Under the pieces are notes generated by a model. The model was not told the origin of the DNA. It ran no database searches and saw only the letters and a program-made list of their open reading frames with translations. Both the position numbers and the translations under genes were made by a program. A DNA stretch of 63,932 nucleotides, the filler included, from Salisapilia sapeloensis CBS 127946 (Eukaryota; Protista; Oomycota), in NCBI GenBank assembly GCA_023334545.1. It is 14 parts of 14 records of this genome, joined end to end, with 100 filler letters (N's around TTAATTAATTAA, not from the genome) between each part and the next. Parts side by side here need not be neighbours in the genome. Positions count along the whole stretch, not along the records: positions 28,191 to 32,597 come from JAADVB010000671.1; 13 more parts are not named here. The stretch is one strand, 5' to 3'. This document shows positions 27,861 through 32,697 of the stretch, piece by piece (the stretch's first letter is position 1; the number at the start of each line of letters is the position of its first letter).

Positions 27861-29589
27861 AATAGACAATTTCTATCTGAATACAGCCAGATTTTACTTG
27901 CATGAATTTGTTCATTGGCATTAAGTGCTAGATGTCTAGAAGCCTCTCGTGTGTGTGTTCGATGGAAATTTGGAGTACTCGTATGACGATTTGGTGGAGG
28001 GTCTGGTCAAGATGGACGAGCTGGCGCCTGGTCGACACACGTTCCAGATGCGAGCTCAGACGGCGGAGGGGGAGACGGTGCAGTCGAACGNNNNNNNNNN
28101 NNNNNNNNNNNNNNNNNNNNNNNNNNNNNNNNNNTTAATTAATTAANNNNNNNNNNNNNNNNNNNNNNNNNNNNNNNNNNNNNNNNNNNNATATGAAAGT
28201 TTGTATGCTGTCCCATTATATTGACTTTACTTTAGTTATGTCGCAGCCATCTAAACTTGTTTTTTGTATGCTAGTCTAGGCAACGCTTCCGAAACTTCAA
28301 TTGTTAATACAAACCACGTATTTGATATCACCGAGGGGAGTCTGTGTCCTACTGCGACCGCCCAACTCTACCTGTTTCCGGAGATAATCCGACAAACAGA
28401 CTCCAGGCGAGGGTGTACATTTTGTCTGGCGCGGAGCGTAGTCGTACCTGAATGAGGCCTTAAAGATTGGTAAGGAATTGGAGTCGAGATTAAATTTTCG
28501 AGCCAGGGCCATTCGATTTCGAGCGGGCTTCAATTCTTCAGCCAAAAGCTCACCTGCAAAGGCTTTATATCCATTATTTAATTTGGGTACGAAAAACCAT
28601 TGGGCGCGCATATTGCACGGGTGGTGACTGCACAGACTTGTCGCTGGACCAACTCGCTCTTGAGTGTTTTCGATTGCTTCATTGAGGTTAGTAACAGGGG
28701 GCGTTGGATAACCGAAGCTTGCTCGCTGTTAAAACTCAGTCGTTTTGGCTTTCATAGTGGTGATGATTAAAAGTAGAAAACTTTACGAATATCATGGTAA
28801 CCCGGAGAATTTAAAATCTATTTTTAGCGTGTTTATGGCTTCTCAGATCTTATGGACATGATATCATTGGGCAATTTACCAGTAGATGCAAGAGGATTGA
28901 ACTGTGGTGCAAGCAAGCATCTATAGCGTTGCCTATGACAAGAAAATAGGCGCATACAGTTTATTTAGAGGTGTCTACGACCAGTGGTGGGTGCTAGTTG
29001 TAGGGATCAGATACGATTCTTGTTTTAAGTGTTTAGGATGCGTTGTTCCTTCAATTAGGTTGCACATGGGCAATTTTGGCCCAAGCTGGAGTATCACCAT
29101 GTTCTTGCCGCCTTGACTCCGTTTCTCGAACTATTTGTATGCTGAAGCGTTGTCAAATACAGTAAAAAATTTACCCGCAAGGCTGTCTCGATATTTCTTT
29201 GATTATTCTACGAAATTATATATATCCTATACAAAGCTAGCATTCTCATTCATTGTAATTGATCCACATTGATAATGCCAATGTACGACATTAACAACGG
29301 TCGAAATCGCGCATTGGATCTGAAGGTTGATTCCCTTCAATAACATTTACTGGAGCGAAGTGCTGCTTCGCTTTTTGGAACGACCTTGAGTGCGGGCATA
29401 ATAGATATTTTATTTTGTTTCTTCATACTAAACAGCATAATTACCATTATCTATATTCTCTAAAAGTTGCTTTGTAAAGTCTTGCCACAGTGTTTTGTTG
29501 GCTTAACTGTTGCAACTAACAGACTAACAGACTCGACTCGTAACTAAGGTAGTACACGTACATAAGCATCGTTATCGCATAAGAAACAT

Positions 29590-29953
29590 TCATAGTTACC
29601 TTCTGTGCAGTGTAGAGGGCACCACATAGACAGCGACTGACTGTACTCCGTGAGATCCGTACATCGAAGTCTTCGATGACCATGTCGGAGACCTCTTGCA
29701 GCGTCAGAATACAGTCACCGTCGAGTTACTTCTTCAGCGCCTCGATGACCTCCCGCATCGCCCTCGTCCGTGTGGCAGCGGCACTACCACGACGCTTGTG
29801 CTCCATCAAGTCACATTTCACTAGACACCACGCCATTGTCGCAACAATGCTACTGTGTGCCGCAACAGCTTTGTAGTCGAGGCCATTGGTGGAAGCGTCG
29901 AGAACTCGCTGCTTAGCGGCGGTGTCTCGTGTCTTCCTCTTTTCCACCAACAT
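29590..29953 (-). mobile_element. Tc1/mariner/IS630-like transposase N-terminal (HTH) relic
   Basis: KQRVLDASTNGLDYKAVA...RRGSA...CILTLQEVSDMVIEDFDVRISRSTVSRCLCGALYTAQKV is the oomycete-type Tc1 HTH pattern. Premature TAA at 29726-29728; no DDE domain seen. Confidence 0.65.
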
Positions 29954-30871
29954 CACTTACAATTTACATTGCTAAAAAGGTATGAACAGGAGGAACTGAT
30001 AACCACTCGCACTCGTAGATTTCACTTTGATTGGCAAGGTTACTGAAATATCCTTTGTTATATCTACCTTTATCAAGCCCACTCCACTTCGATTGCAAGC
30101 TTTTGCACTTCGGTCGGGCAATATTGTAGAATACCCAATAGGCGTGTCTGCGTTCTCTAGCCAGTTTCCGCTAATATTTCCGCGTGCAGCGTTTTGACGG
30201 ATTAGTAGGTGTTTTATTTGTTTCTGGGTCGCTGCTTGAGTAAGCAATTTGTTACATTTACTCAATGTAAGTGCCAAAGCAGATCCTTATAAGCTATCAA
30301 TATTTTAAAATGGGTTCCTTGTCTAGTGACACGCGATAACCGCAAAGTCGGCGACTAGCGTGACTACCATTTGCGTTTGTTCCACACTACCGTAGGCGGA
30401 CTAAGAGCATCCTATATCCTTCCAGAGCATGTGCTAACTATCATCCGGATGTATGAAGACTTTTCCGAGGAACTCGTGCGCAAGCAGCTTTTTATGGCTT
30501 TTGTTTGATCTGGCCACTGCCCAGGTTGTCATTGCACTACTTTTCTGCTTAGACTAGCAACTACTATATTTCAAAGTCACTATTCCTTTTGAAAATGGTA
30601 CAATTTAGCTATTGCAAAACAAAGCACACGTCATTTCGCTCGAATCGTGCATAGGCAGAACGTAACACGTTAGCATCTAAAACCTTACTTACCTTAGCAT
30701 AGAGATAATTGAAACAAAACTGTACCGCAAAGCAAGCTTTATATTGTTTTTACACTTTTATTTAAATGCTTTGATAGATCAAAATACGTTAGTAGCTTGA
30801 CAAATCTTATAGATGTCTTTTCCTTTCTGATCAAGCGGGTCTTATCCAGGTAGTAGAAAGTATATAGAAAA

Positions 30872-30952
30872 GACAGCTTGGCCGAGTGGTTAAGGCGATA
30901 GCCTCCTAAGTTGTTGGGGTAACCTGCGTGAGTTCGATTCTCACAGCTGTCG
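30872..30952 (+). tRNA. tRNA with a tRNA-Ser(GCT)-type body (long variable arm, G73) but a CCT (Arg, AGG-reading) anticodon
   Basis: Perfect acceptor stem GACAGCT/AGCTGTC; D arm GCCGAGTGGTTAAGGC; anticodon stem ATAGC/GTTGT with loop CT-CCT-AA (anticodon 30905-30907); 13-nt variable arm TGGGGTAACCTGC; T arm GTGAG-TTCGATT-CTCAC; discriminator G. Confidence 0.85.
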
Positions 30953-31261
30953 ACCTCGGTCTTGAAGCAAACTTTAGCAGGAATACCGTATGCGCGTCAC
31001 TTTCCATCATTCGGCACTGGTCTATCATCATTAGACCTGTAGTATATTCTATGTTTTATTGTCTGTTTAGTAAAGTAAGCAAGGCAAAGATGATCATAGC
31101 TTAGCCTATAATGTAATGCTTTTAACGTGATTTTTCCGTCACGTGCATATCTATATAAAGCTTTGCGCAAGTAGCATTCTTGTCTGTATGGCACTCTATT
31201 AAGTTAAAGCACTTACAAAGATATATATTTATATATAACAATGAGCACAATTAGACAACAA

Positions 31262-31334
31262 GCCCGTCTAGCTCAGTCGGTAGAGCGCAAGACTCTTAAT
31301 CTTGTGGTCGTGGGTTCGAGCCCCACGGTGGGCG
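31262..31334 (+). tRNA. trnK-CTT: tRNA-Lys (CTT), copy 1
   Basis: Canonical 73-nt cloverleaf GCCCGTCTAGCTCAGTCGGTAGAGCGCAAGACTCTTAATCTTG...GGTGGGCG, followed by T-rich Pol III terminator. Confidence 0.97.
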
Positions 31335-31595
31335 CTTTCTCTTTTCTTTTTTATATTAACACCAATGGAGAGGAAATCATTTTATTAAACAGAGCTATTC
31401 CATAGACCAACAGCGCGCAGTCTATTTTTGCACTTGAGCAAATATTCAATTACACATAATCTCCATCATGAATATGCAGGATATGCATGTGTAAGCAAAG
31501 AGCTTGTAAGTGAAAGCAGATCGTCCAAATTGTTTAAATTTGAGATATTTTTTTAAATATATTTTTATATGATATTGACCAAGCAATTATGTATA

Positions 31596-31668
31596 GCCCG
31601 TCTAGCTCAGTCGGTAGAGCGCAAGACTCTTAATCTTGTGGTCGTGGGTTCGAGCCCCACGGTGGGCG
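31596..31668 (+). tRNA. trnK-CTT: tRNA-Lys (CTT), copy 2
   Basis: Identical to copy 1, with TTTTT terminator a few nt downstream. Confidence 0.97.
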
Positions 31669-32697
31669 ATCACTTTTTCCTTTGCTTCAGTTTACTTGCT
31701 GTCTGCATGCTTGCTTTTATCCACAACGACTCGGTTGTCTACCGTATCACCAGAGCTCATTCTACCGGTGCTGCGTTCACTATTTTACTCAACGCACTCC
31801 ACCACAGTTACCATCTGACCCATTACCCCCGTAATAAAAATCATAATGCATATCGTAAGACCTAGCTTCTGGTGTTTTCAAGCAACATACAGACTCAATA
31901 GCCGCTAACCTTTCAATTTCTCGAGGGACATATTATAGTTGAGTAAATTAGCAATACAAATTCAAAACCTTTCGTTCACTTACTATCTCCGCTTTACCAT
32001 TCTATCCTGAAACGCATTATAAATTTGTTCGGGACTGGAATAAAGCACGTATACGCTTTCCTATTTATCGTGCTCTCATCCCTGACATGGACCAGAACTG
32101 CTACCACCGTTCCTACATGAAAATGAACCCAGCCTCCAATTGCGTATAAGAACCACACGCACCTCTCTCCTTTCCAAACTTCCACTCCGCTACTCTACCA
32201 TTTCGTTTCCTCCCTTAGATCAGCTCAGCCAAGAGCGAAGAACAAAACTGTATACTTGAGACCGAGTGATCGATGCCTCCTTTATCCTCGGTCTCACCCT
32301 GTATCCGCGATCTGACTAAGTCATCTCATTATCGCGGAAAGACTCCATGTACCCAACAGACAATCAACCAGGATGCGCCGAGGAGATCGTTAAAGTCAGA
32401 GAAGAAGTCGAATAGATATGACCGACTGAAAACTGTGAGCGGAGAGCAAAAGTGTCGAATATCCGTGTCTGCACCGGATACGAGCGGTCATCAACTGGCC
32501 TAACCTTCCGACCATACCTCTCCACATCGTCAACGCAAAATCCATACCCATATGTGCATGTAGGTCATCACAAGATCAAGTCATAATATCCATCAAANNN
32601 NNNNNNNNNNNNNNNNNNNNNNNNNNNNNNNNNNNNNNNNNTTAATTAATTAANNNNNNNNNNNNNNNNNNNNNNNNNNNNNNNNNNNNNNNNNNNN

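Follow-up and report, generated by a model that had tools for sequence, protein, structure and literature searches.

A structurally intact tRNA gene with a tRNA-Ser(GCU) body and the anticodon CCT in the oomycete Salisapilia sapeloensis: probably a young duplicate of low activity

The window studied here is a stretch of 63,932 nucleotides from the genome assembly of Salisapilia sapeloensis CBS 127946, and the locus lies in its 4.4-kb piece at positions 28,191 to 32,597 (JAADVB010000671.1). In this piece, ARAGORN called three tRNA genes, namely one labelled 'Arg'(cct) and two tRNA-Lys(ctt) genes. The Rfam model RF00005 matched all three, and the gene with the CCT anticodon (hereafter, the CCT gene) scored 55.6 bits (E 1.9e-10), with its variable region appearing as a 10-nt insertion in the alignment. 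The features of the locus are collected in Table 1.

Table 1. Features of the CCT gene and its surroundings (positions along the window)
Feature	Position	Strand	Basis
Class II tRNA gene, 81 nt, tRNA-Ser(GCU)-like body, anticodon CCT, G73	30872-30952	+	ARAGORN, Rfam RF00005
Anticodon CCT, reads AGG; position 34 is 30905	30905-30907	+	ARAGORN, Rfam, contig support
Variable arm GGG-GUAA-CCU, main serine identity element	30916-30925	+	Rfam insertion; role from PMC9976931
A box TGGCCGAGTGG; D arm the same as in eukaryotic tRNA-Ser	30879-30889	+	Same stretch in at least 120 environmental tRNA-Ser genes
B box / T loop AGTTCGATTCT; T54, T55, C56 and A58 kept; position 59 is U	30931-30941	+	Sequence comparison
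Trailer without T4: TTT at 30973-30975 and 31001-31003; first TTTT at 31054-31057	30953-31057	+	
Stretch under contigs of runs filed as RNA	30779-30997	direction not given	0 differences
tRNA-Lys(CTT) copy 1, followed by T runs	31262-31335	+	ARAGORN, Rfam
tRNA-Lys(CTT) copy 2, identical tRNA, followed by T5	31596-31668	+	ARAGORN, Rfam

The two tRNA-Lys genes stand in tandem, 334 nt apart, and their flanks are unrelated except for the one preceding base and the downstream T runs. A contig of 1059 nt (depth 49.3) from a run filed as RNA (X3, see below) starts in the 3' half of the second tRNA-Lys gene and runs downstream. From 31639 to 31900 and on toward 32597, no open reading frame longer than about 77 codons was found, and this transcript may be untranslated or non-coding. 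We found no convincing coding gene in the 4.4-kb piece, only weak leads to transposon-like relics. Two short stop-free stretches lie on the minus strand, at 29516-29956 and at 28297-28725. The former gave a marginal Pfam helix-turn-helix match at 29516-29683 (HTH_ABP1_N, E 0.13; LacI, E 0.008), which we take to be a broken helix-turn-helix like that of Tc1/mariner or pogo transposases, and the latter gave weak Atlas leads to relatives of FAR1/MULE/ZSWIM-type transposases. Both stretches are probably transposon relics.

The CCT gene can be folded into a complete cloverleaf. The acceptor stem (GACAGCU/AGCUGUC) has seven base pairs without mismatch, and the D arm reads GCC(G)-AGUGGUUA-(A)GGC, followed by G26. 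The anticodon stem (AUAGC/GUUGU) consists of A27-U43, U28.G42, A29-U41, G30.U40 and C31-G39 and encloses the loop CU-CCU-AA, and the T arm (GUGAG-UUCGAUU-CUCAC) has a 5-bp stem without mismatch. No non-standard pair occurs in any stem, and the variable arm is formed by three standard pairs. The discriminator base is G73 (30952), and position 20 is U. The invariant bases U8, A14, G18, G19, A21, U33, T54, T55, C56, A58 and C61 are retained, and the A and B boxes, which form the internal promoter, are both intact. A preliminary description of this DNA, made from the sequence alone, had reported here a tRNA with a CCT anticodon, a long variable arm, G73 and U20; ARAGORN and Rfam find the same tRNA. 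The other details that it gave, namely the perfect acceptor and T stems, the GGG/CCU variable arm and the two G.U pairs, are each matched by the sequence.

As the unusual feature of the gene is a single base, we examined whether the C at 30905 is genuine by placing the Logan contigs of four runs on positions 30300-31900. Run X1 is a DNA run of organism A, probably the source of the window; X2 and X3 come from the same organism in a different study and were filed as RNA by guess. The X1 contig (2977 nt, word depth 80.4) showed no difference over 30300-31284, and the contigs adjoining it have depths of 65.9-80.7. Because its depth equals that of the adjoining contigs, the locus is regarded as single-copy and nuclear, neither organellar nor a contaminant. 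In X2, a contig of 187 nt covers 30811-30997, and in X3, one of 217 nt covers 30779-30995; both are without differences, with depths of 2.9 and 5 across the CCT gene. Positions 30300-30778 and 31002-31217 are without cover in these two runs filed as RNA, so the cover is local to the gene and not a uniform trace of DNA. Furthermore, a 61-nt query, built so that each 31-mer crosses 30905, was searched against the indexed runs. The complete anticodon-arm query was present in five runs, all of organism A and four belonging to the second study; the exact anticodon arm was absent from the indexed runs of any other organism at the level of 31-mers.

These data bear on the possibility that the gene is an artefact, whether through erroneous sequencing or assembly, foreign DNA or an organelle gene. 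A sequencing error at 30905, which the preliminary description had kept as one way out, is ruled out by the DNA contig, which has the usual single-copy depth and no differences, and by the runs of the second, independent study. The other way out, a contig from another organism, does not hold, as the depth is like that of the neighbours and the gene is also found in the runs of organism A filed as RNA; the gene is probably not foreign DNA. An organelle gene is ruled out by the same depth and by the cytosolic type of the body and of the adjoining tRNA-Lys(CTT). We therefore regard the chance of any such artefact as negligible. A SINE or other multi-copy repeat was also rejected: the flanks have the single-copy depth of 80.4, and the sole repeat in the piece is the pair of tRNA-Lys genes.

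In order to identify the body of the tRNA, we searched the JGI metagenome contigs for a Ser-type D arm, leaving the first anticodon base free, and obtained at least 120 loci. Among the matches listed, 114 genes were usable, with 89 distinct canonical sequences, and ARAGORN predicted 664 tRNAs for comparison across all the environmental loci fetched. Position 34 of the 114 genes with the same D arm was G in 111 and A in three and never C or T, so that the anticodons among the matches listed were GCT (111) and ACT (3), with no CCT or TCT. The D-arm pattern with CCT fixed gave no match in the whole JGI metagenome collection or in the viral collection. The nearest canonical gene among the matches listed was a tRNA-Ser(GCT) (locus L071), identical at 75 of 81 positions and with the same acceptor stem. 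By isotype, the top identities among the 664 tRNAs (again for the matches listed) were 0.90 for Ser, 0.74 for Leu and 0.67 for Arg. The 57 Arg tRNAs compared are all 72-76 nt long with a short variable loop, whereas the CCT gene has 81 nt, a length of 81-82 nt being found in 104 of the 114 canonical Ser genes among the matches listed. At position 20, also among the matches listed, 53 of 56 Arg tRNAs carry A, whereas all 152 Ser tRNAs carry T, like the CCT gene, and G73 is present in 110 of the 114 canonical Ser(GCT/ACT) genes listed. Two side observations were made in this collection. A few environmental eukaryote-like contigs among the matches listed carry a tRNA-Ser with ACT and the same D arm (3 of 114 by pattern, four by ARAGORN). 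In addition, five loci (L033:24-2780, L044, L078, L108 and L115) are dense eukaryotic small-RNA arrays with about 10-25 tRNA genes per 2-3 kb; L033 also holds 5S rRNA, U2 and SRP RNA, L044 holds 5S rRNA and U6, and L078 holds U6.

Canonical tRNA-Ser(GCT) genes were also available from closer sources, and the CCT gene differs from those of organisms A and B at five to seven places. The gene of organism A (a 76-nt contig, depth 188) has G34, A42, G43 and C at the position of 30920, with three further differences near the ends of the match. That of organism B, from the same study, has G34, A42 and C at 30920, with two further differences near the ends, and is followed by TCTTTT. The Ser(GCT) genes of organism A, organism B and L071 thus have G34, A42 and C49, where the CCT gene has C, G and U. 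Compared with the 89 canonical sequences among the matches listed, the only unusual bases of the CCT gene are position 34, two positions in the variable loop and position 59 in the T loop, where 81 of the 89 have A and the CCT gene has U. Since identity, length, position 20 and G73 all side with Ser, the body of the gene is, as judged by sequence comparison, that of tRNA-Ser(GCU), with G34C, A42G, a C-to-U change in the variable loop and A59U as the apparent derived changes. These comparisons with the contigs, L071 and the 664 tRNAs agree with the preliminary description, which had recognized a tRNA-Ser(GCT) frame with only position 34 of the anticodon altered. It had also noted that the Ser identity elements are present and A20 is missing, and the counts at positions 20 and 73 and the published identity rules (PMC9976931) bear this out. 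The anticodon CCT does not correspond to a serine codon (the Ser anticodons being NGA, GCU and ACU). The loop CTCCTAA is identical in all six type-I Arg(CCT) genes compared among the matches listed, and AGG decoding by the CUCCUAA loop is structurally plausible because the loop is the same as that of the genuine type-I tRNA-Arg(CCT). The pair C35 and U36 is present in the CCT gene as in canonical tRNA-Ser(GCU) and hence does not discriminate.

A second locus in organism A was found in a contig of 5540 nt (depth 41.8), which matches 30872-30937 with seven differences and is also included in RNA contigs of 336 and 989 nt. It has T at the positions of both 30905 and 30906, giving the anticodon TTT, and diverges into ATTTATCTTTT in place of the 3' acceptor strand, followed by GACCTCAGTCTTGG. 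Because the 3' acceptor strand has been lost, the TTT copy appears to be a pseudogene, a decayed duplicate. GACCTCAGTCTTGG resembles the 3' flank of the CCT gene, GACCTCGGTCTTGA, and this flank common to both copies suggests that the duplication from which they arose extended into the flanking DNA. The TTT copy has half the depth of the CCT gene (41.8 vs 80.4). The contig of organism B matches the CCT gene over the tRNA only, and a comparison with all the fetched environmental loci revealed no similarity of the flanks beyond the tRNAs. The CCT gene has so far been found in organism A only.

We then considered whether the gene is active. The first TTTT lies 101 nt downstream of the gene (31054), compared with 7 and 5 nt downstream of the two tRNA-Lys genes; the absence of a T4 run here and its presence after both Lys genes had already been pointed out and are confirmed by reading the sequence. 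Among the matches listed, TTTT occurs within 20 nt in 79 of 100 canonical genes and is missing in the other 21. A TATA-like stretch is located at about -16 to -9 at the CCT gene and at about -25 to -45 at the two tRNA-Lys genes, in a reading by eye. As the next Pol III terminator is about 100 nt away and the TATA-like stretch lies closer to the gene than it does at the Lys genes, the output of the gene is probably low, judging by its anatomy alone. The contigs from the runs filed as RNA start 61-93 nt upstream of the gene, their strand not being given; this is unlike a typical Pol III start, and the contigs are no proof of a mature tRNA. Their depths of 2.9-5 resemble the 3.3-4.8 that these runs show at canonical Ser and Lys loci, so transcription of the gene may not be below normal.

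Other features bear on whether the gene is still under constraint. Canonical genes score 53.6-65 Rfam bits, and the 55.6 of the CCT gene is a low value among them. When substitutions were placed at random outside the anticodon in a simulation, all the stems and invariants were kept in 7.7% of the trials with three changes and in 3.3% of those with four, and a cloverleaf that is intact after three to four changes is a hint of continuing constraint or gene conversion. The usual marks of a pseudogene, namely broken stems, lost invariants and many copies with the same flank, were not found, whereas the loss of a Pol III terminator was. A weak anticodon stem was also considered as a device that dampens decoding and was rejected. 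The nearest-neighbour energy of the anticodon arm is -0.7 kcal/mol for both the CCT gene and L071, and two G.U pairs are also found in 7 of 100 canonical genes among the matches listed; the two G.U pairs should consequently not be read as a sign of weakness, as had been proposed. In summary, this is a genuine single-copy gene with an intact structure, and it lies within a locally transcribed stretch.

What such a tRNA would do depends on the synthetase that recognizes it. Serine identity resides in the variable arm and, in human and maize, also in G73, and it is independent of the anticodon, whereas arginine identity relies mainly on A20 and C35 with U36 or G36 (PMC9976931); in yeast, the Arg determinants are chiefly C35 and U36 or G36, and position 20 matters little (PMC9976931). 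A tRNA-Ser with the anticodon CCU, tS-R(CCU), is highly toxic in yeast on accumulation (PMC6125640), tRNA-Ser(UCU,G26A) causes 3% Arg-to-Ser substitution (PMC8473984), and human tRNA-Ser anticodon variants such as tRNA-Ser-AGA-2-3 G35A are reported to mistranslate (PMC12993449). Anticodon shifts between isotypes, including those across synthetase classes, are documented across eukaryotes (PMC3923123). The 2014 survey by Rogers and Griffiths-Jones contained a single anticodon shift involving Ser/SeC (PMC3923123), and the fixed isotype switches in Caenorhabditis populations include Ser backbones (PMC13010820). Our literature search found no paper naming a nuclear tRNA-Ser(CCU).

The explanation that we prefer, with a probability of about 0.6, is that the CCT gene is a young, low-activity, anticodon-shifted duplicate of tRNA-Ser(GCU) and at most a weak mistranslator that places Ser at AGG. 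A nuclear tRNA-Ser(GCU) gene would have been duplicated, and its first anticodon base would then have changed from G to C in an alloacceptor shift. Since SerRS is blind to the anticodon, a mature product should be charged with Ser, pair with AGG and thereby insert Ser at Arg codons. ArgRS would be expected to reject the product, given that A20 is missing and that the Ser(GCU) body with C35 and U36 is rejected already: as canonical tRNA-Ser(GCU) must already escape ArgRS with these two bases, the change at position 34 should not create an Arg acceptor. Such a gene could be tolerated only if its output were low or AGG rare, which fits the absent terminator and the single copy. Because the output is probably low, the gene is most likely a tolerated variant, near-neutral or slightly harmful, or a gene beginning to decay, and it would at most cause Ser to replace Arg at AGG at a low rate, with no recoding of the codon. 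Of the original proposal that this is a candidate AGG-to-Ser mistranslator or codon-ambiguity tRNA, the Ser body has stood, and an adaptive role in codon ambiguity is unsupported.

The gene could instead be a silent pseudogene that gives no mature charged tRNA, the RNA contigs reflecting read-through or pervasive transcription. The missing T4 terminator over 101 nt, the RNA contigs that begin 61-93 nt upstream without a given strand and an Rfam score near the bottom of the canonical range would all fit such a gene, and the TTT sister copy without its 3' acceptor strand indicates that this lineage of copies does decay. Ser-body pseudogenes with a mutated anticodon also exist elsewhere; for example, a metagenomic gene with a Ser body (L114:1348-1430, 51.4 Rfam bits) has the anticodon GAT ('Ile'), TTGG for TTCG in the T loop and a mutated D arm, and appears to be a pseudogene of Ser origin that carries a foreign anticodon and is decaying. 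However, in the CCT gene the stems are without mismatch, the invariants are kept and the A and B boxes are intact, a state with a chance of only 3-8% after three to four random changes, and the RNA contigs are confined to the surroundings of the gene, with a depth like that at canonical tRNA loci. We consider complete silence somewhat unlikely. In the opposite direction, the gene might be a maintained and possibly regulated mistranslator, selected for a statistical reading of AGG as Ser or Arg in the manner of CUG in Ascoidea asiatica, a precedent of dual decoding (PMC6041473). The cloverleaf that is intact despite several substitutions, the locally transcribed stretch and the anticodon loop shared with the genuine tRNA-Arg(CCU) are what selection might leave. 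Nevertheless, the gene is single-copy, has no terminator nearby and was not found in organism B, the other indexed runs or the metagenomes; moreover, tS-R(CCU) is highly toxic in yeast (PMC6125640), and the nev-tRNAs of C. elegans exist without detectable mistranslation (PMC4300185). Selection for ambiguity is accordingly improbable. The preserved fold, the anticodon loop of Arg type and the RNA contigs confined to the locus are compatible with an active, Ser-charged AGG decoder, but that this protist nuclear genome possesses one beside a normal Arg decoder is, in our estimation, quite improbable. If it were true, AGG would be read as Ser at a measurable rate, and the case would represent standing ambiguity or early reassignment of a sense codon outside yeasts.

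Two further readings were considered. A remoulded Arg tRNA, charged by ArgRS through C35 and U36 and decoding AGG normally, is conceivable in view of the yeast determinants, C35 with U36 or G36 (PMC9976931), and of the documented alloacceptor shifts across classes (PMC3923123). This reading is very unlikely, as ArgRS must already discriminate against canonical tRNA-Ser(GCU), which has C35, U36 and the same body, A20 is missing, the long variable arm and G73 favour SerRS, and no changes of the body toward Arg were seen. Full reassignment of AGG from Arg to Ser in the nuclear genome is suggested by nothing but the existence of the tRNA, and is opposed by the finding of a single young copy that lacks a terminator and was not seen in organism B. 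AGG was also seen at conserved Arg sites, by the reading of the preliminary description only. Its judgement that full reassignment is unlikely is upheld by the copy number, the missing terminator and organism B, and we regard such reassignment as exceedingly unlikely.

tRNAs that join a Ser body to a foreign anticodon are recognised as causing errors throughout the proteome. To our knowledge, the only nuclear sense-codon reassignments are those of CUG in yeasts, for which such tRNAs are the raw material. A Ser(CCU) gene that is natural and intact corresponds exactly to the construct that is highly toxic in yeast, and the CCT gene would show how a cell tolerates it, whether by weak expression, poor maturation or the rarity of AGG. 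If active, the gene would represent a rare instance of natural Arg-to-Ser ambiguity. Its value is that of a documented example and of a caution for annotation, since the label tRNA-Arg is unsuitable.

Among the known systems, the CCT gene is most readily compared with the alloacceptor shifts (PMC3923123, PMC13010820), in which a duplicate keeps the body of one isotype and gains the anticodon of another by one substitution. The G34C change is likewise seen against three independent canonical references. This case differs in that the shift is from Ser(GCU) to CCU in a non-nematode eukaryote, and an unshifted syntenic ortholog was not seen among the fetched loci. The nev-tRNAs also combine a class II body with a class I anticodon, including Arg(CCU), that is neither Leu nor Ser; their body, rather than the anticodon, decides the amino acid with which they are charged, they correspond to rare codons, and they are expressed and matured without detectable mistranslation in vivo, as shown for the conserved ones in C. 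elegans (PMC4300185). However, the nev-tRNAs are Leu-derived, multi-copy and conserved across nematodes, and carry A73 (115 of 115; PMC3333845), whereas the CCT gene is derived from Ser(GCU), has G73, and is single-copy in one organism. It shows neither A73 nor a Leu origin, and conservation was not seen within the limited reach of the indexed runs, organism B and the metagenomes.

The yeast tS-R(CCU), tRNA-Ser(UCU,G26A) and the human variants share with the CCT gene a Ser body and a foreign anticodon, but they were either engineered in the laboratory or found as human polymorphisms, and their misincorporation has been measured, whereas for the CCT gene charging with Ser is a prediction. The CUG-Ser tRNAs of the CTG clade and of Saccharomycopsis/Ascoidea (PMC5951914, PMC6041473) are Ser-type nuclear tRNAs with the anticodon of another amino acid. 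Unlike the CCT gene, those tRNAs are described as conserved in their clades, with the cognate tRNA-Leu(CAG) lost or weakened and codon usage changed (PMC5951914, PMC6041473). The marks of reassignment at the level of a clade were not seen here, and the CCT gene fits only the broad class of alloacceptor anticodon shifts, a kind that is already known and has been described in flies, primates, nematodes and humans.
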